Shown piece by piece: positions 2,873 to 31,206 of a DNA stretch of 64,000 nucleotides (the stretch's first letter is position 1; each line of letters starts with the position of its first letter). The notes beneath the pieces are model-generated. The model saw nothing but the letters and a program-made list of their open reading frames with translations, was not told the origin of the DNA and did not search any database. This DNA comes from Hyaloraphidium curvatum SAG 235-1. Its lineage: Eukaryota > Fungi > Monoblepharomycota. The stretch is taken from NCBI GenBank assembly GCA_025558095.1, contig JAIVFI010000007.1, forward strand, positions 826,791 through 890,790, written 5' to 3'. Both the position numbers and the translations under genes were made by a program.

Positions 2873-3611
2873 TCAGTTTGCGGCCTTCTTGGCCCTCTTG
2901 CGGGGCTGGTCCCCGGCGGCTCCCCCGCCCGCCGCGCCGTCGGGCACCCCCTCCTCCCCGTCCGCCGTGCCCGCGGCGGACCCGCCCCCGTCGCCGCCGG
3001 CCCTCTTGCCGGCGCGCTCCCCGGGCGTTGCGCCGGCGCCGCCCTGCGTGCGCAGCCGCTGGAGGTGCAGCAGGAGGGTCCTGGGGTCGTCGCCGTGGGC
3101 TTCGACGAGCCCGACGATCCGCCCCGGATCGGGCCGGACGGCGGGCTCGGGCACCGCGGGCTTCCCGGGGCCTCGGATCGGGGGCGGGACCGCGGGCTTC
3201 GGGGGGTCGTTGCCGCGCGCGGCGGCCCGGGCCCGCTTCGCGCCGGCGTCGATGGCGTCGTTGAGCTCGACCCATGCGGTGCGGTGGTTCTCGAGGTTGG
3301 ACCGCAGGCGGGCGTTTTCGGCCTGCAGGGCTTGGATCTCGGCCTCCCTGGCTTGGGCGTGTTCCCTGGCGTCCGCGAGGTCGTCCAGGGCGTGCTGCAA
3401 CGCGGTGCAGAGGACGGCCTGGCTACTGTGGGCCACTTCCAGCAGTCCCTCGAGCTCCTCGGCCCAGGCCGCCTCGTCGGCGGCCTGCTCAGCGAGCCCC
3501 CCGGCCTGCACGGCGTTCATCGTGGCGGGGGTGCTGCGGGCCAGGTCGGGTTGAGAGGCGGACGGCGGGCGGGCGCGGGCCGGCACGGGCTCACCTCGGC
3601 GCGGCGTCCAT
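2873..3611 (-). CDS. Coiled-coil/NLS family paralogue 1 (short form)
   Basis: 17-nt exon ATGGACGCCGCGCCGAG (3611-3595), intron 3594-3534, then STPATMNAVQ, coiled coil EAEIQALQAENARLR, EAHGDDPRTL motif, C-terminal PRKRAKK. Confidence 0.75.
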
Positions 3612-3730
3612 CCCGGGAGCTGATCTGGCGGGGTCGATGCGCTGCGTGCCGGGGTTGGTTCGTGGCGCTCGATGCCGGCTTCTGCTCGGTGGCCTCGTGA
3701 CGGTCCGGTCCCAGCACAAGCGTCCAATCC

Positions 3731-3744
3731 CTGGGAGCTCCCAG
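3731..3744. promoter_or_regulatory. Palindrome CTGGGAGCTCCCAG containing the family upstream motif GAGCTCCCAG
   Basis: Same 10-mer at 7314, 13364 and 15568, each 109-129 nt upstream of a family ATG. Confidence 0.45.
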
Positions 3745-3914
3745 AAACAATCTCGCCGATTATCCGATCGAAACCCATAGCCAGACCACGCGCGCCGGAA
3801 CGCGGCCGGACGGATCCGGGATCCGCTGACAGCATCACACGGACCACCGTGTGTGTCGCGCGGACCGCCGCGCCCGCCCCGCCGGACGCGTCCCTCCGCC
3901 CTCCCCCGCGCGCG

Positions 3915-4608
3915 ATGCGCATCCCCGCTCCCGCCGCCCTCGCCTCCCGGCCCGCCCGCACATCCCCGCGCGCGGGCTACCGCCCCGTCTGCCCGCTCGC
4001 CGAGCTGCTCCCCGGCGGCGCGCGGTGGCGCCCCGAAAGGGGCCTGGGCACGGCGCGGGTGCTGTTCGCGGGGGACGCGTTCTGCGTCGCAGATGAAGAG
4101 GGGAAATTTGCGAGCGAGGCGGAGGGCGAGGGGAGGGCCGAGGTGCTTGTTCTCTCGACGCCGGACGGGCAGCTCTTCGCGCTCTCAAACGTGACCTTCC
4201 CTCCCCCGCGCTCCCCGCTTCCGCTGACCTTTTCCCCCGCCGCAGATATGCCCGCACGCGGGCTACCCCCTCCACGCCTCCTGCTCGCTGACGGACATCG
4301 AGGACGGGCTGTGGGGCAGGGTGCCCGCGGTAAGGTGCGAGCGGCACGGCTGGGCGTTCGACGCGCTGTCCGGGGGGTGCGCGGGCAACCGCAGCGTGAT
4401 CGATCTTTATGGGGTGGAGGTGGACGTGTATTTGCCGGATGGTGGGGCAGGCGGCACCGAGGAGGATGGCGGCGCTGCGGAGGGGGAAGGAGCAGGGGAC
4501 GGGGCGAAAGGGGAGGCCTGGGTTTTCGTGGGCCGGGAACCGGTCAACGCCGACGTGCCCGGACGGCGGTCGCGGTTCGGCGGGAGACCGGTGTGGGACG
4601 CCGCGTGA
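3915..4608 (+). CDS. Rieske [2Fe-2S] domain protein
   Basis: Splicing intron 4191-4245 gives LFALSN-ICPHAGYPL...VRCERHGWAFD, the CxH and CxxH Rieske ligands. Confidence 0.85.
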
Positions 4609-5981: not shown

Positions 5982-6356
5982 ATGGCCAAGCTCACGAGAA
6001 CCTGCCACATCATCATCTTCCTCCTCGCAATCGTAGCCACGGTCGGCGGGTCCGTGTGCTACGCCCTCGCATCCACCCGCAGCATCCAGACCGTCGGCAC
6101 CTTCTTCCTCTCCGCCGGCGCCACGGTGGCGGGGCTGTACGTCATCGGTTTCATCATCTGGAACTGCGCCGCCAAGGAGGAGGACGAGGGGGAGGATCGG
6201 GCTGCGCGGGACGCGGAAGAGGCCCGCGCCAGGGACGGGGAGGCGGCGGGCGCTGCGGGGAAGGATGGCAAAGGCGGGGCGATCGGGAAGAACCAGGTGG
6301 TCGGGGCCGCGCAGGTGGCGCTGAACATCGGGCAGCTGGTCACGGGGCTGAGCTGA
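5982..6356 (+). CDS. Small membrane protein with two TM helices
   Basis: Two hydrophobic segments (IIIFLLAIVATVGGSVCYAL; FFLSAGATVAGLYVIGFIIW), coding-like codon usage, GCCATGG start context. Confidence 0.65.
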   Translation: MAKLTRTCHIIIFLLAIVATVGGSVCYALASTRSIQTVGTFFLSAGATVAGLYVIGFIIWNCAAKEEDEGEDRAARDAEEARARDGEAAGAAGKDGKGGAIGKNQVVGAAQVALNIGQLVTGLS

Positions 6357-7194
6357 TGGCGATCCAATTGCACCGAGCCGTCCTCTTGCCGCTCCGATAA
6401 CAAGCCGGTCCACGGCGTGCGGTCGATCGCCTGGCAGGATTGCTTGTGCTCCTTCCAATCCTTCCGCTGACATCCGTCCGAGCAGTACCGCACGATCTTA
6501 CACTTCGAGCACGCCATGGCGGGTCCTTTGGCGAGGCACGCGTCGCACCGATCGGGGTTCTCGTTGAGCCCGCGCAGCTCCTCGATCCTCTCGTCGATGC
6601 TCCAGTGGCTCGGCTCTCCCGGCGGCCCGGCGAGCTTCCAGTATGCCGCAACATCCGCCAGCCCATCGCGCCCCGCGAGGAACAGCTCCTTGTCGACCTC
6701 GTCCTCCGAGAGCTTGACCGGGCGTTTCTCCTCCGTAATGCCTTCCAGGCCCGAGACGTGGGCCGCCTCGCCGTAGGCCTCCTCCGGGATCGTGATGCGG
6801 TGACGGTGTTGAAGAGCACCAGCGAGGTGTCGAGCAGCTTGATCGCGCGCGCCTTGTAGGGCAGATGGTCGGCGACGAGCTTCGCGTAGGGCACGCGATC
6901 GGCGGCTAGGACCTTGGCGAGGAACCGGACGGTGCGGGAGAGCTCCGACACGGCATTCAGCATCTCGTCCCTGCCCCATTCCGACACGGGCTTGCGCAGG
7001 ACCCGCTGCACGCGCGGGCCGAAGGTAGCAGCGCTCGCGATCAGGTCCAGCAGGTCGGGCCGGTTCGCGAGCCGCGAACTCGCGGGCGGGTGATCGGCGC
7101 AGCGGTCGAGGAGATCGACCAGCGCCATGGCGGGCTCCCGCACACGGAGGTAGAACTCCCACGCTCCCGGGTTCTCCGCGGGTACGACGACCAC
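6340..7194 (-). pseudogene. MYND zinc-finger protein with apparent 1-nt frameshift near 6800; ends uncertain
   Basis: CDAC...CSKCKIVRYCSDGCQRKDWKEHKQSC; the N-terminal half is in another frame with no intron at the switch. Confidence 0.6.
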
Positions 7195-7313
7195 GGGCAG
7201 TGGTGAGTCACCCTTGGCGTCTGTACCATTTTCGGGGACCGCGGCCGGTTGACCTGTGCTAGCAACTGCGTTATCGATTCTTCACTCCGGGCTGGCAGAG
7301 TGATCGGTCCTTC

Positions 7314-8200
7314 GAGCTCCCAGAACCGTGATCCTGGTCCCGACGACGACGACGAGTCGTCACGGCGATCCTCCATCACGAGGCACGAACCAACCCCGAC
7401 ACGCAGCGCATCGGCCCCGCCCGGATCACCTCCCGACATGGACGGCACGCCTAGGTGAGCCCGCGCCGGCCGGAGCGCCGTGCCGCCGACGGCCTCTCAA
7501 CCAGTCCCGGGCAGCATCCCCGCGAACATGAACGCCATGCAGGCCCCGCAAGCCGGCCACAACGGTACCATGGCGCCCGCCGGTTCCCCACCGGAGCCCG
7601 CCGCCGTCATCGAGCAGTTTGGAGGGGACCAGCGCCGCTCGGTCGACCGCCTCGTCGCCGGCCTAAAGGCGTACTACGAGCCGCAGCTCCGGCAGGCGCG
7701 GCAAGCCGAGACCGAGGTGGGCGTGCCCGGTTGCGTGTCGGGGAGGGCAAAGAGCTGACCGGGAGCGCGCAGGCACGCCGCAAGCTCGGCGAGGAGGAGT
7801 GCCGGTCGAAGGAGCTCGCCGAGCAGCTGGGCGAGACCCAGCAGATCGCCGCCAACCTCCACATCCAGAACGGGGATCTCAAGAGGGAGAACGACGGGCT
7901 CAAGGCCAAGGTCCGCGACGGCGAGGCCGCTGTCCTCGAGAAAGACGCCAAGATCGAGCGCCTGCTCGCCGAGAACATAAGCCTCCAGACCAAGTACGAG
8001 AGCCTCGAGAACAGCATCAAAGGCACCTTCGGCCACATGTTCCAAGGCAATCAGGGTGGCAGCGCGGGGTCCGCCGCCGAGCCGGTCACGCCGCGCTCGG
8101 AGCCCGCCGCCGCCGAGGAACGGCGCGCTTCCCCGGCCGCTTCCGAGCCCGGCCCCCCGGAGCAGCGCGCCTCTCCCTCTCTCTCGCCGCCGCCCCCGGC
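7314..8200 (+). repeat. Segmental duplication copy A (partner 15568-16470)
   Basis: Upstream region, exons 1-3 and introns align closely with 15568-16470. Confidence 0.9.
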
Positions 8201-8984
8201 CAGGCCCGTCGAGCCGGTGCCCAAGCCCGAGGAGGAGCACGGACCGCCGCCGGAGCCCGCCGGCAAGGCCGCGGCCGAGGTCTTTGAGATCCCCGACAGT
8301 GACGACGAGGAACCGCCCTCCAGGTGTGTCCTCCGCCCGCGAACCGCACCCGCACCTGCTGACGGATCCCACAGCGCCGTCAAATCGCCCACGTCGGCCA
8401 CCCAGGGCGCCTCCGGCCCCGCCAAGGGCGGCCGCAACAAGGACGGGCCCGTGCGCACCCTGCAGCGCGCCCTCCGCCAACACCACAGGGCCAACGGCGA
8501 CCCGGCCTCCGGCTCCCGCTGGGCCGCCGAGGTGAATGGCAACAGCGAGCTGCGCGAGGCCGTGCTGGCGGCGTGGGCGGCGTGCCCGGCGGACACGGAG
8601 CTCGGGCGCGTGGAAAGGGAGGCCAGGTTCCTCGAGGCCGTCAGGGGGGGGCGCGGGTACCTCTGGGAAAGGTACGAGCCCGGGCAGCCGGCGCCGGGCG
8701 GACCGGCCGGCCGCTCCCGGAGGGGTTCGGGCGCGTCGCGGGGCTCGGCCGGCGGGGGACCGGCCAGGAGGCGCAGGTCGGCCGCCGGCACGCGCGACGA
8801 AGTCCCCTACTGGAGCGACGGGGACGAGCCCGAGGCGGAGGAATCGGGCGAGGAGGAAGCAATGGGGTCGGAGGAGGAGGAGACCGACGACGGCGGCGAG
8901 TTTGACCCCGGCGCCGACTTTGACCCCGAGGAGGTCTGGGCGAGGCCGCGCAAGCGGAAGAGGGAAACGAGCCAGGAGGACTGA
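7438..8984 (+). CDS. Coiled-coil/SIM/NLS family paralogue 2
   Basis: Exon 7438-7454; introns 7455-7514, 7717-7772, 8324-8374; coiled coil, VFEIPDSDDEE, YLWERYEP, C-terminal RPRKRKR. Confidence 0.8.
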
Positions 8985-9517
8985 TCCGGCGGTGGGGCAA
9001 AAGCAGTGTACCCTTTCCCGTGTTTGTCGTGTCAATGTCAAGTGTCGTCGGCGTCGTCGCACGGGGTCCATGTTCGACCTTTCGTTCCGTTTCCATTTTC
9101 GTCCCTGCGACGAAGGGGCACGCGGCCCAATCCACGTATCTGAAGGAGCTGAGCGCGACGTCGCGCCGAGCTGCGGTTCACGAGCGCGAACGCGCGTGGC
9201 GTCTCGGGTGGCGTGGCAGTCAGAGGTCCGACCGTCTAGTCGGCGCCGCGCGGAATCCTGAGCGAGCTCATCCGAGATCCACATCGCGCCTCTTCCTTTT
9301 CAATCTTTTCCCCGCGCGGTCGCCGCTGCTGCAGCTCCATCTCTGTCGACGACGTCTGGTTTGGCCTCCCGCCCAGCCATGCCAAGGGGTTGTGTGCACT
9401 CACCTCCGCCCGGCTGCTCGCTCCCATCTGAGAACACCCTCTTCCACATCTCCCACCGCGCGACGCAAACGACCCCCGGCACGCCGCACCGCACACACTT
9501 GCGCCCCCGCCCCCACC

Positions 9518-11513
9518 ATGCCCGCCGCCCCCAGGTACGCCGGGAAGCGCCCCGACGCCGCGCCGCGCTGCGAATCTCAGACGGGCCGCCGCCAGCATTC
9601 CCGCCGAAACGAACGCCGCACAGGGGCCTGAGCCTGCTCCGCAGGTGCCCAGTGGAAACCGCAGCGAGCTCGGCGAGCCCGCCGGGGCGCAGGCGCCCGC
9701 AACCGTCCCGGAACCCCTCGTCCAGATGTACCAGGCCATGAAGCAGGCCGCGGAAGTCGAGGCCAAAGCAGAGGTGCGTTCCCCCGCCTAGTTCCCGGGA
9801 GACCGCGCCAACCGCGGTGCGCACGCAGGTCGCAGGGGTGCTGGCCGCCAAGGATGCCGAGATCCGGGCCAAGGAACGGGCCGTCGCCGAGAGGGATGCT
9901 GCGATGGCCAGGCTCAAGGAGGAGTCTGACGCCAGGGTCCGCGAAGCGGAGAAGGCCGAAGCCGAGGCCAAGAAGGAGGCCGAGCGCGCCGTCGCAGACA
10001 ACAAGAGGCTCGCCGACGAAAAGGCCGAGGTCGAGAGCGCCAAGTCCGCACTCGAGGCCGAGAACTCCAGCCTCAAGGACACCGCCACCGTCATGGTGGG
10101 GATCTTCAACAGGGCCGCCGAAGATCGCGACGCCGCCAAGGCAAAGACGGAGCGCCTGGAGGCCAGGCTCAGGGCCGAAGCGGCCCGCAGGACCAGGGCG
10201 GCGATCAGGGTCGCACGGGCCGAGGGCGAGCTACTGGCGGCCAAGCAGGAGCTCGCAGGCGGCCCGCCCACGATTTTCAGCGCCAAGGCCCTCGCCACGC
10301 CGCCGAACGAGGCGGCCACCGGCGGGGCGGCGCGGGATGGCGACCGGCCGTCGACGACGCCGCTGGCCTCGACCGCGGCCAAGGGCAAGGGACCCGCCGC
10401 GCCGCTCATGTTGGCGGGTCCGCAGCAGGGCAAGCAGCAGGACGCCACGCCCGCCGGCGCCCCGCCTGCTGGTGCCGGCGCACCACTCCGGCGGGGCCGG
10501 GGAGGTGCAGCGCGACGCCTCCCGCTCGCCCTCGCTGCCGCCGCCGTCCAGCCTCGCGGAATACCGGCCCAAGCCCGCCCAGCCGGCGTCCAGCAAGACA
10601 ACGGGCACCGGCAGTGTGAACTTGATCAGCAGCGACGAAGACGAGCCGCGGAACAGGTGAGGTTCCCGCACGCGCACCGACCCACGCCCGCTGACCGACC
10701 TCCACTTCGCGCAGCGTCCGCGGCAGCCTCCCGCCGGCGATCCTGAGCACGCTCGGCATCGCCGGCACCCCGGCGACCGAGACCAACGCCGGCGCCGACG
10801 ATGCCGCGGCCCACCCGTCCCAGTCGCACGGCGCCCCGCGGCCCCGCACCACTCTCAAGCTCCCGGCGCGCCTCCAGGGCGGGCCGCCGCAGGCCCAGAG
10901 CGCTCCGTGGCAGCCGCCGCTCTCGAGCAGGGCGCCCGCGTCCATGAACGGCATCGCCCGCCGCATCAAGTGAGTCTGCTGCCAAAACAGATCCACCGGG
11001 GCTGACCACCATCGCGGCAACAGCCACGGCACGCCGACGGCGCCCAGGCGGTCCTCCTCGGCCGGATCCACGAAGCTCGTCCGGGCCGAGCTGGAGCGGC
11101 GATTCCCCGGCAGCAACATCAGCCTCAGCAGCACCGAGATCAAGAACGCGTGGAACTGGAAGGAGGTCGAGGCGGTGCCGCACGCCGACAAGCCGGCCAA
11201 GGTCGTCGAGCAGCTGCAGAAGCGGCGCCCCGAGATGTTCCCCGCGGCGGCCGCCGACACGGCCGAAGAGGCCGCCGCCGCGCTCGCCGCACTGAGCGCC
11301 CCGCCGACCGCCGCGCGCACGCCGAGCCCGCCGGGCGCCGCCGGCCCGGCCGAACGCGCGTCCGCTAAGAGGATGCGGGAGGAGGCCGCCGGCACCGGCC
11401 ACCACGTCGACTGGAGCGACGAGTCGGGGGACGAGGCCGGGGGAGACGCGCCTACGGGCGGCGACGGAGACGAGGGGGCGCCCCGCAAGAAGACGAAAAA
11501 TGGCGAAAACTGA
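9518..11513 (+). CDS. Coiled-coil/SIM/NLS family paralogue 3 (apparent frameshift ~10450-10500)
   Basis: Exon 9518-9534; introns 9535-9595, ~9774-9828, 10657-10714, ~10970-11023; long coiled coil, VNLISSDEDE, C-terminal PRKKTK. Confidence 0.7.
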
Positions 11514-12176
11514 TTTCCGGTAGCGGTTCCATTTGTTTGCTGGGGTTTCGGGTCTGTTGTAGTCTGTGAAGTGGCAAGAGACGCCGTTCGTTGCGATTCG
11601 TGATGCCAGGCGGGCAGCATGGCATGGTGCCCGGTCCGGCCATTGATGGCACGCTCGAAACGTTAGGATACCGGAGATGGAGCAATGCCTGTGGAGCAGG
11701 TCTCTGGCGAGGCGGACTGGGGACGCGCGGGACCGGGTCGCCGTTGCGTTAAGGTGCCTCGGGGCCCCGGCCATCTTGGCAAGAGTGGATCCGTGGTGGC
11801 GGTTGCCTTTGCTCTTTGCAATGATGATATCGGCGCTAGAAGATGATGGTATCTTCCCTCCGCATTGCTCCATTGCCGTTCTACAGTTCGGACTCCACCT
11901 GGAACGTCTTTGATGCGGCCAGCTTCTTTGACCATGTTACGAAGTTCAGCACATGACGATGGATACTCGAAGATCAGCATGCGGCAAACACCATGTCGAT
12001 TGGCATGTCCTTCCCTGTCCTTCCCACTTCTACATCCGCGTTCTCGTACGTGATGCGCACTTCAACTCGACAGTGAGCTCTTCGCTATAGACGATCGGAG
12101 TCCAGCTCGAAAGATCACCCTGATGCAGCAGCAACATCATGATGCGTCATCAACACGCCCGCGCATCCGAAGCCGC

Positions 12177-12632
12177 TCACTCACCGGCCTTCGGGCGCAG
12201 CACGGCGATGCCGCAGTCCTGGGCAGTGCACCCGCGCTTGCCCGCGTGCATCTGGAAGGCAGCCACGGTGCCGTACGCGCGCCGGCAGATGGCGCACTTG
12301 AGGTGGTCGGCGCGGCAGAAGGCGTGCTTGGCCGCGTTGTCCTTGCGCGGGCGGATGCCGCACACACCGCAGGTGACCGTGCCGTCCGCGTTAGGCGGGA
12401 GCAGCACGTCCCTCTTGTTGGTGCACAGGTCGGCGTGCTTGATGGGAGTGCCGTAGACGGCGACGGACCGTGCCTCTTCGACGGCGTCGACCAGGATGCG
12501 CTTGACCTCGATCTTCTGCCGCCCCGTGCCCGGGATGCGGACGGCGACGAAGAGCGCGGGCTCGCAGTCGGGGCGCTGGTCGCGCAGCGGGTCGGCCCCG
12601 ATGCAATCGGCCCTGGCGCGGGTGGTGTTCAT
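12177..12632 (-). CDS. Small protein with two C2H2/C2HC-like zinc fingers; 3' end may be spliced
   Basis: CGVC...H..C and CAIC..Y.....F..H....C. Confidence 0.6.
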   Translation of the reverse strand: MNTTRARADCIGADPLRDQRPDCEPALFVAVRIPGTGRQKIEVKRILVDAVEEARSVAVYGTPIKHADLCTNKRDVLLPPNADGTVTCGVCGIRPRKDNAAKHAFCRADHLKCAICRRAYGTVAAFQMHAGKRGCTAQDCGIAVLRPKAGE

Positions 12633-13472
12633 GGCGGATGTGGGGAGACTGCGACGGGAAGTCAGTCACGACGCTGCACAGCCCCAGTTCGCCCCGCCTT
12701 CTCCACAAGGTGGGCCTCCCGCGCGCTGCCCCGGGGACAAATCACGCCCCACAACCGCAGAGGCCGTGCCGGCGGGTCCGGACGTGTGGATGGGACGCCC
12801 GTGCGGCGCGGCTGGCCGCGGCGCCGTCGCACGGCCTAACGCGGGGACACTCCTTGCCCAGATCATCTTTGCCGGGCGAAAACTCACGTCCAGGGAGCCG
12901 CGCAGGTTCCTCTGCTCGTTGCCTCGAAGCTGTGCGGTGCCGATGGCGGACCTGAAGTGGCGGCAGCCGGGCGGCGGTCCTGGACTGCCAGGTACGAGGC
13001 GTGTTAGAACTGGGCCCGTAGCGGCGGGGTAAACCCGCCCGTCCCGGGGACCGTCGGCCCCCAGGCTTCACGGCGCGCAACTGACGAGCAGTTTTGGGGT
13101 GCAGATGGCGAGGCACGCACAGTTTTTGGGGCGGGTGAGCCCGGCAGGAAATGAGGTGGTTTGTGCGGGTCGGGCGCCATCACGATTGCACGGCGGTGCA
13201 TCGCGCTCCACCTCCAACGGTCGCACGCCTTGCCAGCGAATCCGCCCCGGTAACCCACCAGCGAGAACATGGCGCCATTTTGGATTTCATATCCGAGGGG
13301 GATTCGGCCCGATGGACTCGTTTTTGCGGTGCGAGGTAAGCTCCATGACGAGTTCGCCCCTGCGAGCTCCCAGGACCGCGCCTACATAATCCCGTCCGCG
13401 CGCCCGCCATCACGCCGACCACGACAACCGCAATCATCACCGTTGCGCCATCCGCCCGCCCGCAAAGCCGCC

Positions 13473-14591
13473 ATGGATCCCGCGCCCAGGTGAGCCCTAC
13501 ATTCGCCGACGCACCGCACGCCTCTCAATCGGCCTCGCCCAGCAACCCTGCCGCGACGCCCGCCGCCCAGCCCCCGGCCCCTGCCCGGAACATGCCCGGA
13601 AACGGCACGCCCGCGCAGACGGTTGCCTCCAGGTAAGCACGCCCGCCTGCCGGCGCCACGGGCCTCCTCCTGACGTTCACGCCCGCAGCGCCCCCGCCCA
13701 GCTGAACGCAGCGCTCACCCCCCAGCAGTCGGCCCAGCCGGCGCCCCGCAACGGCGTCGCCCTGCTTCAGCCCCCCATTGCGGTACCTGCCCCCCCCGAA
13801 GGGAGCTGGGCCGCGCAGGCGTGCGGCCTCATCGCGTGGGGCAGCAACCGGGACGCTGCCGAGGCAGGTGACCCGCCGCGCCGCCAAGACGTGCTGCTGA
13901 CAAGCGACGGTCCGCGACGCAGATCCGCCAGCTCAAGGGGACGCTCGCCGCCAAGGAGGCCGAGAACGCAGGGCTCGTGCGCGACCTGGGGCGGGCCAAC
14001 GCGGCCGCGACCGCGGCGAAGAACGACAAGATCAAGGCCGAGGCGAGCAACGTCTCCCTCGAAAGCAAGGTCCGGAAGCTCGAGAGCACGGTCGGCAAGC
14101 TCGAGACCAAGGTCCAGGAAGGCGAGAAGGCAGCCTCCGCCGCCAAGGCCGAGTCCGAGAAGGCCAAGGCCGAGTCCGACAAGGCCAAGGCCGAATTGCA
14201 CAAGGCCAACGTCGAGGCGAGCGAAGCCAAGGCCGAGACCGCCGCCCTGCGCTCCGAGAAGGACGAGCTCCTCAAGCTCCTGGGGCCGCTCGCGGCCGCC
14301 TACAACCGCATCCAGCGCCGGCCCGCCGCCCTGCCCGCCACCCCGCCCGCGGACCCCGCGACCCCGGCGGCATCCCCCGCGCCTGCCGGACGCGGCGCCG
14401 CCACCGCCACGCCGGCGAGCGAAGGCGTGCGCACCGCGCTCGAGACGTTCGACCGGCTCCGCGCCGCCCCCAACAAGAGGCCCGCCCAGCTTGCCCGCGT
14501 GTCTGGCAGGGCGGTCGTGTCCGACAGCGAGGACAGCGACGACGAGGGCCCCCGCAAGAAGGCAAACACCGGCGGCGCGGGCAAGAAGTAG
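13473..14591 (+). CDS. Coiled-coil/NLS family paralogue 4
   Basis: Exon 13473-13489; introns 13490-13542, 13633-13688, GC-AG 13864-13922; heptad repeats AKAESEK/AKAESDK/AKAELHK, VVSDSEDSDDE, PRKKA. Confidence 0.8.
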
Positions 14592-18771: not shown

Positions 18772-18940
18772 CGTGGCAAGGAAGCGACGAGGGTGGTTCG
18801 ACTTGGAATGGCACAGGATCTTTGGTTGGGAAACGCCGATGGATTGTCCATGTCCTTGCAGCGCCTCGCCCCTTTGCCCCCCTCGCCGGCGCCCCGCGCC
18901 GCCGGTATCCCCCGTTTCCCGGTCCTCCCGAGGAACTCCC

Positions 18941-20481: not shown

Positions 20482-22582
20482 ATGAGCGGTAACCGCGCCC
20501 GCCCCTCCTCGTCGGCGACGGACAATTCGCAGCGCTCGCCGCAGAGCGCAGTCGCACCATCGCAGCCCGCCTTCTCCCCCTCGACCGAGACCGCCGTCGC
20601 CGCCGCGAAGCACCAGCGCAGGCGCTCGGCCAACTCGGCCGCGTCGGCAAAGACGACGCAGACTTGGCACACCCTCGAAAACTTCCTGGGAGCGCAGGCC
20701 CAGAACGACAAGCAGAAGGGCTACGCAAGCTCTGTCCGCTCGACCGCAACCGACGGCGCCATCGACGAGGCCGGCGAGTCGGACGTGGAGAGCAAGGGCA
20801 GCGGCAACACGACCAAGTCAAAGTCCAGCACCGCCTCGTCGGCCACGGCCGTCGCCCTCAACCAGCCCATCATCATCCTGGACGGGAACGGGAACCCGAT
20901 CCCCCTCGAGGGGATGGCGGGGAAGGAGGAGCAGAGCATGGGCTCCAGCATGACCTCGAAGGACGGCGAGAACTTCGAGTACCCCCCCGAGCGGGAGTAC
21001 CGGACCCCGTTGACCATGTTCCTGATCGGACACTTCTGGATCGTGCACCTGCTCGTCATCTGCGGCATGAGCTGGGTCATGACCTTTTACGTCCCTCAGG
21101 TGGGCTTCGTCGCATGCAGTGCGCACCGCAGCCACCTGATCCTCACCCTCCCCGCCCCTCCACGCAGTTCTACATCGACGATGAGATGTGGAACACCGGG
21201 TGCTGGTGGAAGATTGGCTACCTGCTCCCGCTGCCGTATACCCTCGTCTGCTTCGTCGGCTTGATCCTGCCCTTCCCCATCCCGCGCAAACCCGACGCCG
21301 TCATGGAGCGCATGTTCAAGCAGCGCGAGGTGGACAACCTGTACGTCGTCATCGTCACCAGGGGCTCCAACAAGGAGGCAGGTCGCACGCACCCGGTTCC
21401 GCATCCAGCGCTGACCTCTCGCCGCCCAACCAGGCCGTCTACCGCTCGTACCACTCGATGCTCCACCTCGAGGACGTGCACCCCTCGGTCCGAGTGCACG
21501 TGCTCACGGACGAGCCCTACAACTACCCGGACATCAACTGCTGGTCCTGCCCCAAGGCGTTCACCTCGGGCAAGTCCAAGTACAAGGCCCGCGCGCTCGA
21601 GTGGTACCGCAAGACGCTGAAGCTCACCGAGCGCGACTGGGTGCTGCATCTCGACGAAGAGAGGTGGGATCGGTGCGCATTTCCGCGCGGATCGCGGCTG
21701 ACTTGCTTCCCCAAAGTGTGATCGACGCCTACGGCGTCCGCCGCGTGCTCGAGTTCATCTGGTTCACCAACTTCGACATGGGCCAGGGCCCCATCTTCTA
21801 CAACCAGCATCGCTACTGGACCAACCCGTTCTACACCGTCGGCGACGCCATCCGCGTCGGCGACGACCTGTCGCGGTTCCACCTGCAGTACAACTACTTC
21901 CGCCGGCCCTTCTTCGGCGCGCACGGATCGTTCCTGCTCAACAACGGCAGGGTCGAGAACGAGGTCACGTGGGACCTGGCGTCGCTGACGGAGGACTTTG
22001 AGTTCGCCGTCAACGCGTGGGAGAAGGGGTTCAAGTGCGGCGCGGTGCCCGCGATCATCAGGGAGCAGAGCCCGCAGCGGCTGATCGACTTCCTGAAGCA
22101 GAGGCGGCGGTGGGTCTCCCCTTTGCTCTTTGTTCTCCTCGATCGGCGCTGACCCCGTCCGCGCAGGTGGTACGTCGGCATCCGCCGCCTGCCCCGGTTC
22201 CTCCCCAAGCTCTGGGCCTTCTTCTGGACCCTCGGCACGCTGGCCCTGTACTTCACCGTCGCATCCATCTTCCTCGGCATCTTCATCCCGATGGGCACGC
22301 CCCGCTGGCTCGGTGCGATCAAGGACTTTATCTTCGTCACGTTCGTCTACCTCTACGTCCTCGGTGGGCATCCACTCGCACCTCCGCCACCGACTCGGAG
22401 CGCTGACCATCCCCGCAGGCGTCTTCATCCAGGACATCGACTACGGCTTCTGGACCATCCGCGCCATCCTGCAGATCCCCGTCGTGATCGTGATCCAGTT
22501 CGGCTGCGTGGTGATGGAGTGCGTGGCCATCATGTACGCGCTCGTGTCGCCGCCGCAGGGCTTCGACATCATCAAGAAGTGA
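20482..22582 (+). CDS. GT2 glycosyltransferase, egghead/BRE-3-like beta-1,4-mannosyltransferase
   Basis: YKARALE, WVLHLDEE, DAIRVGDD, HGSFLL, SLTEDFEF, EQSP..DFLKQRRRW, multiple TM helices. Confidence 0.88.
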
Positions 22583-22678
22583 GGGATCGGCGACGGGGAT
22601 GCGGGGACTAGAGATAGAGGGGGCTGTATAGTATGGGAGGTGTACGCACGCAATTGATTCCGAAATCACTCCATGCCG

Positions 22679-23986
22679 TTTATATCTTCGGCTTCGGCGG
22701 GCGGAGCCGAGGGCCGACGACGATCAGTCCGCGGTCCCGCTGTTCCGTGAGCCATTCCCGCATGCCCTTTGGCCGGACTTGGGGCCATCTGTCGCGGGGA
22801 GGCTCGGTCAACCTGGAGAGGCCAATGCCGACTGCCAAGGCCCTACAGTTTGGTGTCGTTCAGCTTGGGATCGACCCAGTAGTGGTTGAACGCAATGAGC
22901 CTGGAGGAAACAGGGGTAAGTCGGACCCGGCACGCCCGGCAAGCGAGACCAACCTCTGGTACTGCGGGTACTTGGATCTGTCGTCGACGGGGTGTCCGAG
23001 GGGATGCCTCTCGACCTCCACGGGCACGCCGACGATCTCCTCGAACATGCGGCGCTGCTCGCCCGTCTTCCACGACTCGGTGAAGATGCGGACGGTGCGG
23101 TTGCGGGATTTGGACTGGTCCGGGTCCGAGATCATGGCGGCGATGTAGGCGCCGATCTGTTGCAAGGGGGAGAAGATATCAGGAAGAGCCCTCGAGCAAG
23201 GTCAACATGACTTACATCGTCCAAAGATATGGACATGACCTCGCCGGCACCGTCGGGTCCCACGTGAACCGAGATGGCTTTCTTGCCATCGAAATACCAG
23301 TCCAACGGGGCATTGCGCCAGATGATGTCGTAGTAGACGCCGGTCACGACGGCGGTGTACTCCAGCCCGCAGCGGATGGCCTCGTCGATGACGGCCCGTT
23401 TCCGCTTGCTTATCCGCCAGATCCGTTCCCGGGGAAGGTTCTCGTCGTCAGGCCCGTCTAATCGTGGCCATCAGTACTTGTAACAGCAGCCACGGAGGCC
23501 GGTTTGACCCACATTGGGAAGGGAAGAAGCGGGTGACACCGGCTTTTGCCGAAGCCCGAACCAGGTTGATTTCCGAGACCTCGATCGCCTTCGGGTCCAC
23601 GAGCGACAATGCCGAGATGGTGCACTGAATGCCCGCGAGCGAGCCGGCGAGCTTGTCGACGTCCGAGTAGTCGACGGCCGCGTACCGAGCGCCAAGGCCG
23701 ATGAGCTCGTCCGCGCACTCCCGCCGGTGTTTAGGCAGCTTCCGAGGCCAACTGTGAGTCAGAGAGATGCTCCTTCGATCAAAACTGATGCCGGCCCCAC
23801 GTCTTTCAGCTCTCCCCGCCCTATAATGAGCACCTCCTCGAATGTGCCGGACTCCCGTCGGTTGAGCTCCAGAATCGCCTTTGCGATGTAATAGCCTGTC
23901 GTCAGCCCCGCATTCGGGTCGCCCTTTATCGCTCCTGCAATGCAGACGCGTCTGAGCGGGCCATCGTGTTTCCCTGGGGAGGGCAT
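22679..23986 (-). CDS. NmrA/isoflavone reductase-like NAD(P)-binding protein
   Basis: VDYSDVDKLAGSLAGI, NLVRASAKAGVTRFFPSQ, LEYTAVVTG, ISLDD-IGAYIA. Confidence 0.8.
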
Positions 23987-24095
23987 CGCGTGGGAGGCGT
24001 TCGCGGAAAGTTTGCCGCCGGTCGGTCGCAAGAACAGCAATCGAATCTTCTCGCAGCACGAATCTATCTAGATCCCAAATATAGGAACAACGACA

Positions 24096-26521
24096 TCAAT
24101 AACGAGCCTGATCTTCCCAGATTCCGAGCTCTTCGTTCCACCTCATCCCGCCCTTGCGCTTCAGAAACTCGAAAGCCCCGACCGCGACGCCCACCGCCGG
24201 CACGAGCCGCACGACGCTGGTGCCCCAGCCCTTGTAGAAGCCGAGAAGGCCGTCCCGCTGCCACACCTGCTTCGCGCAGTCCCAGGTGGAGCTGTAGGAG
24301 AAGGGATGCAGCACGGTCTTTTGCGCCATCATCCTGGAGCGGACCAGCTGGAGCGGGTACAGCATGCTCTCGGCCAGCAGCGAGGTCACCATCGTCATGT
24401 ACTGGAACGGGAGTTGGTCAGCTCGTGCTTGATCGGAACGGCGGGAAGAGAATACGCACCAGGACTCGCGTCGGGGACGGTGGCACATAAGTGCCCTCCT
24501 CGCTCTCGTTGTCGTCGAAGTACCGGTTCTCCAGCACTTCGTAGGCCGCATCCGAAATGGCTGTAAATGGAGTGAGAAGGGGTGTCCCAAAGGTTGATGA
24601 CGGAAAAGTTCACTCACCGACATATGGCACCACTGACGCCAGACTCGCACCGAGGCCGGCATAGAATCCGCGCACCCCTTGGAACTGGTACACCTCCGAC
24701 GCGGCTTTCCAAAAGGTATTTGGCCGCGAGCGCGCGCCTCGCGCCTCCAGAAGCCGAGAGAGCCGGGTCTGTACCCGCTTGGCCTCAACAGCAGGATCCA
24801 CCGACGTCGAGAAGGATCGAGAGCCTCCGCCGGCTCTGCGGGGCCGATCGCGTCCGGGTCCGTCGCCGTCCTTGCCGACAGGAAACTTCGCCTTGTCGGC
24901 CGCCTCGGTCTTGGGAGCTGCTACTTTGGGCTTCGAGTTCGCGTTCGCCTTGTTCCCGCCATCCGAAGCCTTGGCGTCACCGGGCGGCGGTGGTCCTGCC
25001 TCCTTAGCCGGAGCAGTCTTCTTCACCTCCAAGCTCTTTATGGCCACGTTCTCGCCTTCGACGAGTCTCTCGACACCACTCATCATCCGCGTCCGGATCG
25101 TATCGAGCTGGGAAATGCCCAGTCAGCGGCGTGATGGGTTGACAAGGCGACGAGGGTACTGTACCGGGTGAACAAAGCACTGAGCCACCAGTCCGCTGAT
25201 CGACGTCGCGAGAAGCAGGCCTGATCGTGGCAGAGCGTAGTAATCCTCGATGCCTTGACGCTGGGCAATGTGATACCGCGCAAGCCCCAGCGACAACGTC
25301 CGAACCGCCGTCTCCAGCGGTAGCTTCACCAAAGCCGTCGTGTTTCCGCGGAACAAGCCCCGCACCAAGCCTCCGTCCTTTGAAATGTACCGTACGGCTT
25401 CCTGAAAGCGCCGATAAGTCAATGCCCGGCCTTGAGACGTCAAGAGAGATGGCTGCGCTGGCGGTTTCGGCGCCTCGGCTCCAGTCTTTTCGGCAGCAGC
25501 AGCCACCCTGGCCCGGCGCCGTGCACGCCGCTCCCGCCGGCCTCCCGCGTCCACCAACTGCGCGCCTCCCAGCTGCCAGTACACTCTGATCCGATCCAGA
25601 GGAGCCGTAAGAGTCCGGGCAATAGCGGTGCTGGCCATGGCCGCAGCAACGATGCGGCCCTGGAGCTCCTCGGCGCGCGATGCCGATAGGGGCAGATTGA
25701 TCATGTCCATCCCGAAAACCGAGTAGCTGAGCGAGTAGATGTTCTCCTGGTACTTATAGATCTTCAGAAGGCCTTCGGCATCCGCCGTCGCACCGGGTGG
25801 AGCAAGGAGGAAGTGATCACGGAACTCTTGGAAGGTCAGCTGGGCAAGTAGGTGAGCCGTCTCGATGGCGCGCGACGAAATTGCAGCTTACCAGGCCATC
25901 TTTGCCTTCCTTCCCCATGAGGCTGTTGATGAAGGCTTCCTCCTCCAGGAAGCTCAAGTCGAGCTCCTCGCGAAGAGCGTGCCGGAGTTCTTCCTTGGAG
26001 ACCTTGAAGTCGCCAGATATAGACGTGGTGTCACCTTCTTCACCATCTGGCCCGCCACTTCCCGAGTCCAGCATGGTGAAAAGGTTCCAGAGTTCCTGCT
26101 CCTTTGCCAATACGAACGCCTCAAACTCCTCGTAGTCGAGCAGACCTTTGTCCTCGTCTCTATCCGCAAACTCCATTATCTGGGCCGACAATGTCCGTGC
26201 CGTGGTACTCGTCCGTCGCTTCCGCTTTGCCTCGGCCTCGGCCTTCTCGTGGAGCTCCCCGGTATGCCCCTCGTCGTGGGCCAGGTCCGCGACAGACGAC
26301 CCGCTCCCCAGTCGCCGAAAGTAGTCCTCCAGCTCCGCAACATCGATCTTGCCGCTCCGATCGCGATCCATGGCATCGAAGAGCCTCTTGATCCGGGCCC
26401 GGTCCGACGCCAGGGAAAGCGATGGCGGCAGGGGGACCTTCGGCACGTCGGGCCGCTCCGGTTCCGGCGGCGCGGGAACAAAATCCGGCCGCACGCGAAT
26501 GTCGTTCGGCCTAGGATCCAT
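24096..26521 (-). CDS. Calcium-binding mitochondrial carrier (SCaMC/Sal1-type ATP-Mg/Pi carrier)
   Basis: EF-hand DRDRSGKIDVAEL; carrier repeats APLDRIRV, GLFRGN, GFYAGL, YPLQLVRSRM, GFYKG. Confidence 0.88.
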
Positions 26522-26913
26522 GGCGAAAGCTGTCCGTCGTCAAGCTCACGCAGGGTCCCCGATGCCGCCAGGGACTCGGGAGGAGACTGCCACGCGAATG
26601 GACGCGATGCGGGTGGCCGACGCAGAAGACGGGGTAACAGTTTCCCAAAGATGCCAAGCGGCGCGTAGAGTCTGTCCAGAATGGTGCGCACTGCGCGTTT
26701 GGAGCTCCGACCGAATCAGGGACCTGATCGGCGCCCGCTAAGGCGTTCCTCCATCGGCTCTCTAGGCCCCCGCCTTATGATAGCCCCGGAAGAGAGTCCG
26801 CACTTTAGCCGCGCACGCTCACCTCAGTCATCGCTCACACCGTCCGACGACAGTTGGCCGGGAGAAACCGTTGCGGACCGTTGCGACTGTGTATGGGATC
26901 CGGAGCCAGCACG

Positions 26914-27596
26914 ATGGCCAGCGCAGCTACGAAGGAGAAGGGTGCGCTTCGCCTCGAGCCGGTCCACGGGCGACCTTCTCACGGCCTCTCAAATCGCCCC
27001 TCTTGGTCGTCGTCCTCGGCCGAACACCGCTTTTTGGGCCTCTCGCCTATGTCTCTTCGACCTGGATCTGCTCTTGCCGGCCTGCCGACCGCTTTGTGTC
27101 GCCTACGTCTCGTCGGCCTGGATCTGCCCTTGCCGGCCTTCATTCGAAACAGTCGCCCAGCTCATCAAGGACAACAAGATCATGGTGTTCTCCAAGAGCT
27201 ACTGCCCGTACTGCGATACCGCCAAGTCGACGTTGAACAAGATGGGCCTCGACTACAAGCGGGTCGAGCTCGACGAGATCCGTGGGTCCCCCCGTTCCGG
27301 CGCCAGAGGAACTTGTACTTAACCACCCTTGGTGCTTCTCTTAGCCGACGGATCCCAGATCCAGGCGTATCTGCAGCAGATCACCGGCCAGCGGACCGTC
27401 CCCAACATCTTTGTCCGCGGTGGGTGTCGCTTTTGGCCTCCAGCGACTTTGGGAGCTGACGTCCGGCATTCTGACCTCAGAACGTCATGTCGGAGGCTGC
27501 GACGCAACTCTGGATGCCGTCCGCCGCGGCACCTTCCAGGCCCTGGTCGACGGCAAGTCGGACGCCGAGAGCGCCTTCAAGCTCGTTAAGCTCTGA
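26914..27596 (+). CDS. Dithiol glutaredoxin
   Basis: FSKSYCPYC, GQRTVPNIF, HVGGCD; 3 introns, the first about 210 nt. Confidence 0.93.
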
Positions 27597-27749
27597 GCTT
27601 CGCGGGGGGAATCGTTCAACGAACTCCCAAAACCCAACATGTAATCATTTCTTGATGCCATAGATGGATTCGCGTCTAGAAAAGACCGTACGGACAACGC
27701 CTCGAACGCCAAGCAACCACCAAACTCAGAGGCCCACTACCCTGCCTGC

Positions 27750-29134
27750 CTAGAAAGGCGCGTTGTGCCATCGCTCCCCTTCGGTCAAAGCGCCCTCCTT
27801 CTTCAGATCCCGCGTCACGATCGGAGGCTGCCCCGCGGGCACATCCGCCGCCAGGCCCCAGTCCTGTACAAACAGGCGAAAGTCAAGCTTCACCATCCGT
27901 TTCCCGTCTCGCAGCTGGATGAAGGGGTTATCCGCCTGATCGACGATCTTGATGGTCTGTCCTCTGCCATCCGAACCCATGATGGCCGAGTACGAGTTCG
28001 GGTTCGTGCGGGGGCCGGCGGGATTGACGGCGTGCGCGACGAAGCGGATCTTGGCCCAACGGAGGCGCTCGTCGGCAAGGAAGGGGCCTCCGAAGACTTG
28101 TCCGTTTTCAATCATAACTTCGAGTCGGAAGCGGAAAGGGCCAGCATAGAAATTTCGGAGAGCGATGGCTCTTCTGGCGAGCTGGGCGGCGTCGTTGCTG
28201 GGCGGTGGAACCTCCACGTAGAACTCGTCGTAGAAGGCGTGGCGCTGGCCCTTGACAGGGAGGGCAACGGGCCGGAGGCTCGCGAGCTCCTTCTCGTGGT
28301 TCACGAGCAACTCGTTCAGCAGCGCTAGGTGGCGGTCCTTGGCACTCGTCATGTGCCGCTTCATCATGCTGCGCTTGCACTCGAGGGATTCGTAGGTTTG
28401 AGCGGCGCAAGAAAGGTCAAGGTACCGGTTCCTACCTCATGGTCACAGCCTCGTGACTCGCAGGACAGGATTTCGTGGGGACAGACCTCGAAGTGGGCAT
28501 CCAGCAGGTCGCGGGTGACTTCGACACTGCACCCCTCGTTGTCGCAGGCAAGAACCGCCTTGGGGCAATCTTCGGCGTGTTCCTGCACGACGTCCCAATG
28601 ACTCGCTTTTCAGCAACGTCTCGAAGCCACGTTTTCGGAGACCTACTCACCTCAAGGGTATCGGGTGGCCGGACCACGGCACCACAGTCAGCGCACTTGC
28701 CTTTCTCGCACGAGTTGAAGTGCGTGTCGAGGTCCCCGACGTCGCCTTCCCAGGAGCACTCCAACGGGCACGGAATCAGAAGGTTCATGAGCGTCCGCCA
28801 CGCGAACTTGTCCTCCTGCAGATCCTGCACCGCAAATCAGATCCTTTCCGGCCGAACGCAACGGACGGATCCCGCCCACCTTGATTTGGGTGCGGGAGAA
28901 ACGCTGGGCGCACTCGGGGCAACTGTGCACCGCTGTCCCGGCCTGCTCGGCAAGTTGGACCACCCGCTCGAGGCACGCGCGGTCAAAGACATGCGAGCAC
29001 GGGAGCACGCGGGGTTCCTTGTAGGGCAGAGATAGTTCCAGACAGATCGCGCACTCGAACTGCTTCCGGCTCTTCTCGAGAAACGCTGTCTCGCGTTCCG
29101 GTCGTTTCCGGACGGAGCCCGCGGCGGTGGGCAT
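27750..29134 (-). CDS. RING / TRAF-type zinc-finger E3 ligase-like protein, copy 2 (full length)
   Basis: CAIC...PCSHVFDRAC...CPEC; several TRAF fingers (CDNEGC..H...CP), short coiled coil, FYAGPFRF MATH-like domain; paralogue of 17722-18771. Confidence 0.85.
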
Positions 29135-29657
29135 GCTGCTACCCGACACGCTTCCGAGGCTCGAGCGCCAATGACGATGCCCCCACGAACGCGGGCCGGT
29201 CCGGGAGTTCGTGAAGTCACGCGGTGATATCTGATGGGCCGCCCCGTCGCCGCGGCACGCCGGCAGCCGGCTCGCGGTGTCCGACATCGGAGCTGGTTCC
29301 CTTCCAATCGCTGATCTCTATACCGAACTGATCTAAAGCACTTTATACATCGCTCATCGTTCACTGCTGCTCCCTGGACGCGCCGCATTGTAAAGTCACG
29401 CATTGTAAAGTCACGGAATGTGCATGGGATGGTCCAGCAAGCTAACGTTCCCACGACATGGAGCCTGACAAAAGGGCCTTTAGACCCGACGTTCACGCTC
29501 TGCGAAAGCGTTTCGGCATTTGTGCCGTGACGGGCCGATGTCACTCGCCATGGGCACGGTCACGGACCTCCGAGCAACCGCCCCAAATGCCTCCTAGACC
29601 TCGCGATACGACAACGACATTGATTGACACGAAAGCACGAAACATACAAATCGGATC

Positions 29658-31206
29658 TTAGTACTCCCTGCTCGGCTCCCTCCTGGCCCTCTTGCGGCGC
29701 TCCTCCCCCTCGTCTTCCTCGCCATCCTCGCGGGCGGGCAGGAACTCGCCGTCGCTCTCCTCATCCTCGCTCGACTCCTCGACCCCGGGCTCCTCCGCGT
29801 CGCTACTGTTGGCGACTTCGTTGTGCCTCTCCGAGGAGGCCGCCCTGCGCCGCTTGGCCGCACCCGCTCCAGCAGGGTCGCTGGAGGTGTTGGGGGTGCC
29901 AGCCGCGGCCGACGGAGCCGCGGTGCGGATGACGCCGCGCTCCTCGAGAGATTCGCGGGCGGCTCGCTCGCGCTCGGTCTCCTGCGTGTCGGCGGCGGGA
30001 TCGTACCTCAGCCAGAGGCCGGGGAACGTGGCCTTGAACCTCGCGATGTAGATCTCCTGCTTCCTCTCGTCGGAGAGCGAGGCGTCACCCCGCAGGAGGC
30101 GCCACTTGTTCGAGATGGCGTTGCGCACAGCACCCCTGGCCCTAAGCTGGCGTAGCCTGACCTTTAGGGTTGCGGGGTCGTTGGCGTGCACCTCCCTCAG
30201 GACGCTTTCGATGATCTCGGTCGGGCCCCTGGCGAGCGTCTGGGTGGTGCTCTGGGGGCTACCATTGCTGAGGACTGGATCAGTTTCCCTGAGGATGGCG
30301 GGCGATCGGGTACTCAGGGTACTCACGACTGGGCGTCGTCGTCGTCGTCGCCAGTGAGATCCCACACGATGGCGGCCGAGGGGGACCTGCTCTCCCTGGC
30401 AGTCTGCTCGGGCTTGGACCGCGGCTCGGCGAGCTTGGCCGGCGGCGGCAGCGAGGGCGATCGGGAGTCGCGCTGGGCCCGGGCGGCGGGCTCGGAGCTG
30501 CGCTCCTCGATGACCGGGGGCTCTGAGGGCGCAGGCGAAATGCGCCGCTCCGGGACAACGGGCTCCGCGGGCGGAGTGACCGGCAAGGGAACGAGTGCGT
30601 CGACCTGGGCGGCAGGGTTGCCCTGGAGGAAGCTGTTGAAGCTGGCGGCCGTGGCGGCCATCATGTTGCGGAGGTTGGCGTTCTCGGCCTGCAAGGCGGC
30701 CGCTTCGACCCTGGCCCGGTCGACGTAGGCAGCAGCGGCGTGCTGAGTCTCATGGAGCCGGATCTCGAGCTCGCGGGCCTTGTTCTCGGAGTCGGTGTTG
30801 CTGGCGACGAGCCGGGCGTTCTCCGTGGCGAGCTGGGCGTTCTCCGCTTCCTTGACGGCGAGCTCCCCGCGGAGCCGATGGATCTGCGGGTCGGCATCAG
30901 CGTCGGGCTCCCACACCGGCGGCGGATTGCATTACCTCGGCCACGTCGGCGGGCCTGCCGTGGGCGACGATGTCTTCGGTGCGCTGGAACTGGACGCGGG
31001 CCTCGTGGAGCGCGGCCATAGCGGCGTCGAGCTGGGCCCCGGCGCCCCCGGCGGGCATGAGAGCGGGGCCGTGGGGCGTGTGCTGGACGGGCTGCGGGGG
31101 CTGCAGGGCGTTCATCTCGGCGGGAGTGCTGCGAGGAACGCCGGTTGAGAAGGCTGTCGCCGATGACCTGCCGGCCAACGCTGGCTCACCTGGGGGCGCC
31201 GTCCAT
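29658..31206 (-). CDS. Coiled-coil/SIM/NLS family paralogue 6
   Basis: Exon 31206-31190; intron 31189-31129 plus two more; IVWDLTGDDDDD, HANDPATL..LWLRYDP, RRKRARR. Confidence 0.8.

Follow-up and report, generated by a model that had tools for sequence, protein, structure and literature searches.

Near one end of contig 7 of the early-diverging fungus Hyaloraphidium curvatum SAG 235-1 lies a cluster of seven paralogous genes, g1 to g7, that open with the same short 5' module. Six of them fall in the stretch analysed here, the window of 64,000 nucleotides (assembly GCA_025558095.1, contig JAIVFI010000007.1, positions 826,791 to 890,790 of the forward strand), whose coordinates are used below unless another sequence is named. 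At the sensitivity available, the family is an orphan, specific to its lineage. On balance, we favour its description as an orphan subtelomeric multigene family grown by duplication, whose product may most plausibly be a nuclear, dimeric adaptor bearing putative SUMO-interacting motifs (SIMs). The exon models on which this description is built were assembled from coordinates; that of g3 is a joined model with an X at a frame change.

2873–3611, minus strand: g1, exon 1 3611–3595, intron 1 3594–3534 (61 nt), exon 2 3533–2873; 225 aa; second intron absent; helical domain reduced to a remnant at about 3142–3053; end PRKRAKKAAN.
7438–8984, plus strand: g2, exons 7438–7454, 7515–7716, 7773–8323 and 8375–8984; 459 aa; SIM-like VFEIPDSDDEE at 8280–8312, helical domain at 8433–8690, KRKR near the end.
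9518–11513, plus strand: g3, exons 9518–9534, 9596–9773, 9829–10656, 10715–10969 and 11024–11513; a +1 frame change near 10440–10505 is required to hold the conserved C-terminal parts in frame; SIM-like VNLISSDEDE at 10616–10645, divergent helical domain at 11058–11249.
13473–14591, plus strand: g4, exons 13473–13489, 13543–13632, 13689–13863 and 13923–14591, with an extra intron (13633–13688) in the model; 316 aa; SIM-like AVVSDSEDSDDE at 14511–14546, directly after which the protein ends, without a helical domain.
15697–17256, plus strand: g5, exons 15697–15713, 15774–15975, 16032–16585 and 16647–17256; 460 aa; coiled coil at about 16032–16280, SIM-like AIDLTGGDD at 16539–16565, helical domain at 16675–16932.
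29658–31206, minus strand: g6, exons 31206–31190, 31128–30936, 30883–30327 and 30267–29658; 458 aa; SIM-like IVWDLTGDDDDD at 30370–30335, helical domain at 30239–29982.
Upstream of the window by 3.7 kb, minus strand: g7, ATG at position 7071 of sequence L021; same 5' module, opening MDGAH|S-IPAHMNAIQ; 411 aa.

The models are clean for g1, g2, g5, g6 and g7. A first-pass annotation, made from the letters alone, had proposed six members, each opening with a 17-nt exon followed by a phase-2 intron of 53–61 nt that completes a Ser codon. All six sites are borne out, and the total rises to at least seven genes with the 5' module, the seventh standing upstream of the window. At 3611 (minus), 7438, 9518, 13473, 15697 and 31206 (minus), an ATG and the 14 nt after it end in AG and run into GTGAGC or GTACGC. 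Intron 1 measures 61, 60, 61, 53, 60 and 61 nt in g1 to g6, is in phase 2 throughout, and exon 2 begins with C in all six genes, so that the split codon reads AGC (Ser). A degenerate pattern for exon and donor, ATGSMNSSNNNNCCNAGGTRMGCC, finds six matches in the 31.9-Mb genome, all at the family sites, and its reversed control finds none; the module is therefore real and far beyond chance. Matches to a looser pattern for the intron-1 module, searched over the genome, are likewise confined to the cluster.

We define the module by three parts: an ATG whose next 14 nt close with AG; a phase-2 intron, 53–61 nt long, in which the branch region is TCTCA(A/G); and an exon 2 starting C-A-x-(C/T)-C-C and encoding S-x-P-A-x-x-N-A-x-Q. 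Seven genes have it, all in the cluster and all within 821.7–858.0 kb of contig 7. Its layout is exemplified by g2, and the equivalent stretches are given by alignment.

7310–7514, plus strand: 5' module of g2, with GAGCTCCCAG at 7314–7323, the 5' leader, 17 coding nt, and intron 1 with GTGAGCC and TCTCAAC.
3744–3534 (minus), 9400–9595, 13364–13542, 15568–15773 and 31330–31129 (minus): equivalent 5' modules.
3731–3744, 7314–7323, 13364–13373 and 15568–15577, and about 7198–7189 (minus) of L021 at the seventh gene: sites of GAGCTCCCAG.

Five of the seven genes have the element GAGCTCCCAG some 110–130 nt upstream of the ATG, and the g1 site is part of a 14-nt palindrome, CTGGGAGCTCCCAG. The window holds five matches where 0.33 would be expected. 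A role for the element in promoters across the genome was rejected, as 158 occurrences against 136 in the reversed control amount to no enrichment, which makes it a feature of these paralogous promoters only. An Rfam scan of the whole window returned no match, so intron 1 is not a known RNA. Retention of intron 1 gives a stop (AGG TGA), and in five of the seven aligned genes exon 2 keeps an in-frame ATG where the peptide reads M-N-A. One idea suggested by this arrangement is that intron 1 could conceivably be a switch, selecting between an upstream frame of six codons and a start that lies ten codons downstream.

Downstream of the module, a second intron in phase 0 follows a Glu codon (GAG) in g2, g3, g4, g5 and g6 and is missing from g1, in agreement with the first-pass annotation's five genes; the donor in g4 is GC, not GT. 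The GC-AG intron of g4 (13864–13922) has the donor GCAGGT, and its paralogues have GT at the same position.

Evidence from RNA comes from the assembled contigs of one run over 9450–15449, which covers g3 and g4 and from which isoform proportions are not readable. That they are RNA follows from the skipping of introns on either strand and from the Illumina adapters at their ends. In g3, introns 1 (9535–9595) and 2 (9774–9828) are spliced; in g4, intron 1 (13490–13542) and the GC-AG intron are spliced. Removal of the intron behind the 17-nt exon, as the first-pass annotation predicted, is seen in both genes examined. The interval 10250–10850 of g3, including the region of the frame change, is almost uncovered by the contigs.

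The first-pass annotation had also called the family unrecognised. This holds for g2: a word-index search of public proteins with its exons 3 and 4 returned no match, not even g2 itself. It does not hold throughout, since the NCBI protein DFJ74DRAFT_765677 (225 aa, hypothetical protein) is identical to the spliced g1 model, MDAAPS included, g5 is present in the public set as a 227-aa fragment model only, and a distant paralogue on contig 16 is listed as a hypothetical protein.

Alignment of the proteins resolves seven blocks. The N-terminal peptide M-D-G-x-P-S-I-P-A-x-M-N-A-x-Q is followed by a helical region, then by a Pro/Ser-rich disordered linker with conserved S-P sites. Directly 5' of a phase-2 intron comes an acid-flanked hydrophobic motif (VNLISSDEDE, AIDLTGGDD and IVWDLTGDDDDD; more loosely VFEIPDSDDEE and AVVSDSEDSDDE). 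The fifth block, a helical domain, has the signature G-P-T-x-I-I-E ... H-A-x-D-P-x-T-L ... R-L-R-Q-L-R ... N-x-W ... F-P-x-L-W-x-R-Y-D-P. It is succeeded by a basic A-A-K-R-R-R-A-A patch with a second motif, V-x-Y/W-S-S-D-x-E-E, and an acidic run. The chain closes with K-K/R-x-K/R, the consensus of a classical monopartite nuclear localisation signal (NLS), in g1, g2, g3, g5 and g6. The C-terminal basic patches are as the first-pass annotation described them. From this consensus, the products are probably nuclear.

The second block was modelled for g5, whose exon-3 part (95 residues, two copies) is predicted to form a parallel, in-register dimer. The homodimer prediction scores 0.59, whereas none of three controls exceeds 0.00; 21 of 30 solved one-chain pairs reached this mark and none of 23 single chains did. 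Runs agree in at least 94% of contacts, with a partner predicted local distance difference test (pLDDT) score of at least 86. The contacts are i–i with 3–4 spacing over residues 1–82 of exon 3; heptad a/d contacts between identical positions over tens of residues, which we took as the mark of a parallel dimer, are therefore present in the g5 model as a prediction. This supports, short of showing, the pairing of the coiled coil as a parallel dimer.

In exon 4, only residues 12–92 or so, the helical domain, are ordered. The domain, about 80 residues long, is modelled with confidence as a bundle in which four helices are long and two short (pLDDT 88, predicted template modelling score 0.75).

For the acid-flanked motifs we asked for a SIM core of [VIL]-x-[VIL]-[VIL] or [VIL]-[VIL]-x-[VIL] with acidic or phosphorylatable flanks in a disordered region. 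The strict core occurs in g3 (VNLI with SSDEDE), g5 (AIDLT with GGDD) and g6 (IVWDLT with DDDDD). The fit is loose in g2 (VFEI with PDSDDEE) and g4 (AVV with SDSEDSDDE), and g1 and g7 have no such motif at the usual place. The resemblance of these short motifs to known SIMs suggests that the proteins may bind SUMO. A Rad60-SLD profile run over the genome exon by exon recovered ubiquitin, ubiquitin fusions and a ubiquilin-like gene only, and picked out no SUMO gene.

Database, Pfam and fold searches were run exon by exon, and the joined models served for alignment, identity and the ratio of nonsynonymous to synonymous substitution rates (dN/dS). Pfam gave no family at its cut-off for any exon, only sub-threshold generic coiled-coil models. 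The domain profile (six sequences, 85 positions) had no match in a PDB sequence search (best E 0.5). The domain model had none in Foldseek against the PDB (best E 2), in a BFVD fold search (E of 0.86 or more) or in an ESM Atlas fold search (template modelling score of 0.54 or less). Its best VIA-align hit over 48,161 chains (Z 4.8) is within the noise for helical models, and ESM Atlas feature scores, up to 0.84, stay below the meaningful level. A scan of metagenome contigs for close relatives found none. Searched with HMMER against 1.84 billion representative proteins, the profile places the family in the H. curvatum genome only and in no other fungus: the three proteins matched are the 227-aa g5 fragment, the contig-16 paralogue and one repetitive-protein artefact. 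Lineage-specificity, as claimed in the first-pass annotation, holds at this sensitivity with two same-genome proteins as the only relatives, and neither profile nor Foldseek search gives a confident match to a known conserved family.

Within the genome, the helical-domain profile finds seven loci, namely g2, g3, g5, g6, g7 and two copies outside the cluster.

Contig 5, 132.6–134.0 kb (4598–5976 of L020): truncated copy of g6, 97.8% identical in nucleotides to its 3' two thirds.
Contig 16 (3725–5302 of L022): distant paralogue, NCBI KAI9021887.1, hypothetical protein DFJ74DRAFT_768493.

The contig-5 copy, on another chromosome, begins abruptly after a Thr/Arg-rich gene has reached its 3' end, and is on that account 5'-truncated; its frames are still open. 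The contig-16 paralogue has its parts arranged alike, from coiled coil through Pro-rich linker and domain to an acidic/basic tail, and has no 5' module. The first 60 residues of its public model apparently derive from a doubtful frame.

The cluster lies close to a chromosome end, as the first-pass annotation had supposed. Contig 7 ends at window base 64000 in a true telomere repeat, which fixes the cluster at 33–68 kb from the end of the chromosome, with the ATG of g6 at 32.6 kb. We regard a cluster within tens of kilobases of a telomere repeat as a subtelomeric family, and this is the position found.

63838–64000, plus strand: telomere repeat (TTAGG)n at the end of contig 7, about 160 bases with some 30 copies of TTAGG and one TTAGGG variant.

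The unit on contig 7 has five bases, TTAGG, and is not TTAGGG, as far as known the usual fungal telomere repeat.

The copies carry a record of exchange. In nucleotides, g2 and g5 are 95% identical over the last 60 nt upstream, 90% over intron 1 and exon 2, 81% over exon 3 and 55% over exon 4; g5 and g6 are 74% identical over exon 4 and about 60% elsewhere. Since g5 is g2-like in its 5' two thirds and g6-like in exon 4, the copies have recombined. An inverted duplication has its arms at 16410–18510 and 30496–28014, each including a RING-finger gene. Between g1 and g2 or g5, only the 5' module (82% over 165 nt) and the domain remnant are common. These patterns indicate that recombination between copies produced mosaics, and that g1 and g4 are forms without most or all of the helical domain. 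Over whole proteins, g2 and g5 share 57% identity, g5 and g6 47%, and the remaining pairs 23–37%; the high divergence stressed in the first-pass annotation applies to most pairs and not to these first two.

Pairwise dN/dS lies at 0.13–0.8 where both members are intact and at about 1 between g6 and the truncated contig-5 copy, estimates that are crude, being pairwise, with strong G+C bias at third codon positions and YN00 giving no value for several pairs. Ratios under 1 are found for both the N-terminal part and the helical domain, and those of the tails go up to 0.8. This indicates relaxed purifying selection, as far as such comparisons of sequence can tell. With values of 0.13–0.8, there is no sign of positive selection, an idea therefore dropped, and the rapid evolution under genetic conflict proposed in the first-pass annotation is not supported: the ratio approaches 1 for the truncated copy only.

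In the reading that we favour, one ancestral gene gave rise to all seven cluster members, which have retained its promoter motif, 5' leader, 17 coding nt, phase-2 intron and peptide M-D-x-x-P|S-I-P-A-x-M-N-A-x-Q. The family grew within the final 70 kb of the chromosome as segments were duplicated, both in tandem and in inverted orientation, and recombination or gene conversion among copies then yielded mosaics, short forms without the domain and probable decaying copies. Full-length products would come from g2, g5, g6 and g7, and from g3 if its frame is corrected. They would run from a coiled coil of about 80 residues through a Pro/Ser linker, one or two SIM-type motifs and the helical domain of about 80 residues to an acidic tail and the terminal K-K/R-x-K/R. 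How such a protein might work is a more tentative matter: it is possible, if somewhat doubtful, that it serves in the nucleus as a dimeric adaptor, its SIM-like motifs holding SUMO-modified partners and its helical domain one specific partner. The scaffold or adaptor role named in the first-pass annotation is likewise an inference.

Two RING-finger paralogues stand directly downstream of g5 and g6.

17722–18243 (plus) and 28688–29287 (minus): RING-finger paralogues, with zf-RING_2, zf-RING_11 and zf-C3HC4 above their cut-offs.

Both were copied along with g5 and g6, in inverted orientation, and the plus-strand copy aligns to the other only in pieces. This co-duplication, at two of the seven genes, hints that family members may cooperate with the adjoining RING proteins. 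Elsewhere in the cluster, a minus-strand gene at 11929–13086, between g3 and g4, has introns 12119–12183, 12649–12887 and 12985–13085 with support from an RNA contig; its Cys-rich product of 151 aa has no Pfam match. Between g1 and g2, the open frame 6059–7162 (minus) encodes a MYND zinc finger (PF01753, E 2.6e-10). The G+C content is 66–72% over most of the cluster (window 1–22000) and 61–63% in the spacer between the inverted arms (22000–30000); GC-biased conversion from frequent recombination could be a source of this contrast.

Known systems resemble the family in part. The SIM-bearing adaptors and subunits of SUMO-targeted ubiquitin ligases (STUbLs), such as RNF4, Slx5/Slx8 and the PIAS-type SIMs, have motifs comparable to the SIM-like I-D-L-T, V-N-L-I and I-V-W-D-L-T cores of the family, which precede runs of Asp, Glu and Ser in a disordered region. 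To this likeness the family adds a basic, NLS-like end and, at two members, an adjoining RING-finger gene. The family differs in that its chains include no RING and are homologous in sequence to none of these proteins, and its helical domain and N-terminal peptide are not known in them. For a STUbL we would expect a RING in the SIM-bearing protein or in an obligate partner; Pfam finds none in any family member, and RING genes occur only as neighbours of g5 and g6. With the TRIM proteins, also named RBCC for their RING, B-box and coiled coil (for example PML), the family would share a dimerising coiled coil, nuclear targeting, a SUMO–SIM logic, a fast-diversifying multigene family and a RING nearby, on the family's side as predictions. 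In contrast to them, RING and coiled coil are on separate genes and there is no B-box; the family coiled coil is predicted to be parallel, whereas that of TRIM proteins is antiparallel. TRIM_CC as a candidate reached 16.2 bits against a cut-off of 30, in the contig-16 paralogue only, with neither RING nor B-box, and was rejected.

In genome organisation, the family resembles the lineage-specific subtelomeric multigene families of fungi and protists: a telomere within tens of kilobases, tandem and inverted duplication, recombination mosaics, truncated copies elsewhere, and a conserved 5' end before a variable body. Such families usually encode surface, secreted or metabolic proteins; unlike these, the H. 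curvatum products lack a signal peptide and look nuclear. Shugoshin (PF07558 / PF07557) also has an N-terminal coiled coil and a basic C-terminal end, but the family's copy number and helical domain do not fit. Shugoshin_N gave 12.8 bits against a cut-off of 30 (E 0.1), there was no Shugoshin_C match, and this candidate was rejected too.

Several observations weigh against the reading that we favour. RNA covers two of the seven genes, g3 and g4, through assembled contigs. The g4 intron 13633–13688 is retained in the sole RNA contig that covers it, and unless it is spliced the frame from the ATG stops at 13703 and leaves the coiled-coil part without a methionine of its own. The g3 intron 10970–11023 is retained in the contigs, its donor then giving a stop, and g3 needs the frame change described above. 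As contigs keep the commoner form, spliced forms of g3 and g4 may still exist. The SIM-like motifs are short, with the strict core confined to three genes and g7 lacking a motif at the usual place; g4 and g7 have no strict K-K/R-x-K/R match. The finding of no relatives rests on a profile of six sequences and 85 positions, and protein sets miss unannotated genes such as g2. Some of these points would suit a cluster made up mostly of evolutionary debris, in which a single functional gene has recently been duplicated and the duplicates, without distinct function, are drifting into pseudogenes, as would the loss of most or all of the helical domain in g1 and g4, the 5'-truncated contig-5 copy with its dN/dS of about 1, and ratios of up to 0.8 in the tails, along with the g3 frameshift and the in-frame stops of the retained introns. 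We consider this unlikely, though the least so of the alternatives, because five members keep long intact frames over three or four exons despite divergence to 23–57% identity, neither the N-terminal part nor the helical domain reaches a dN/dS of 1, an alignment of divergent copies still gives a confident fold for the domain, and transcripts exist.

A different account makes the family half of a lineage-specific, diversifying nuclear ubiquitin/SUMO system, in which SIM-bearing dimers recruit the RING proteins downstream of g5 and g6, as a split SUMO-targeted ligase or a TRIM-like module, and conflict with viruses or selfish elements drives the expansion. It would draw together the RING genes (zf-RING_2 above cut-off), duplicated with the 3' halves of g5 and g6, the SIM-like motifs, and a cluster that is subtelomeric and mosaic. 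A RING neighbour at only two of seven members, dN/dS without a sign of positive selection, and the weakness of gene neighbourhood as evidence leave it somewhat less probable again. Very improbable, in our estimate, is a known nuclear coiled-coil family diverged until its signal was lost, be it a kinetochore, cohesion-protector or meiotic axis/double-strand-break protein of the shugoshin or Mer2 type. The layout is similar (conserved N-terminal peptide, central coiled coil, short conserved C-terminal part, basic end), and there are weak sub-threshold Pfam coiled-coil matches, including the Shugoshin_N match mentioned above. Yet every Pfam hit stays under its cut-off, the helical domain is without a match in fold or sequence, nothing matches in any other fungus, and seven mosaic tandem copies are, from general knowledge, unexpected for single-copy housekeeping factors. 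As slight a chance attaches to the boldest reading, a lineage-specific nuclear system with a novel helical fold in dimeric SIM adaptors that bring SUMO-marked targets to a co-duplicated RING ligase and diversify by subtelomeric recombination. Such a RING–adaptor system, if true, would give a fungus its own counterpart of TRIM/PML-type or STUbL-type surveillance, divided over separate genes; and if the SIM-like motifs and the RING neighbours do cooperate, they would make up an independently evolved SUMO-dependent nuclear system.

The orphan subtelomeric family that we favour has mainly descriptive value: it is well delimited, in an early-diverging fungus, and public annotation of it is partial, with g1 correct, g5 a fragment and g2 absent. 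Its small helical domain, confidently modelled and without a known relative in structure or sequence, is a cheap target for structural and interaction work. The cluster as a whole illustrates cleanly how a gene family can be built in a subtelomere: genes are duplicated, copies recombine and domains are lost, while one 5' regulatory and splicing module is retained.

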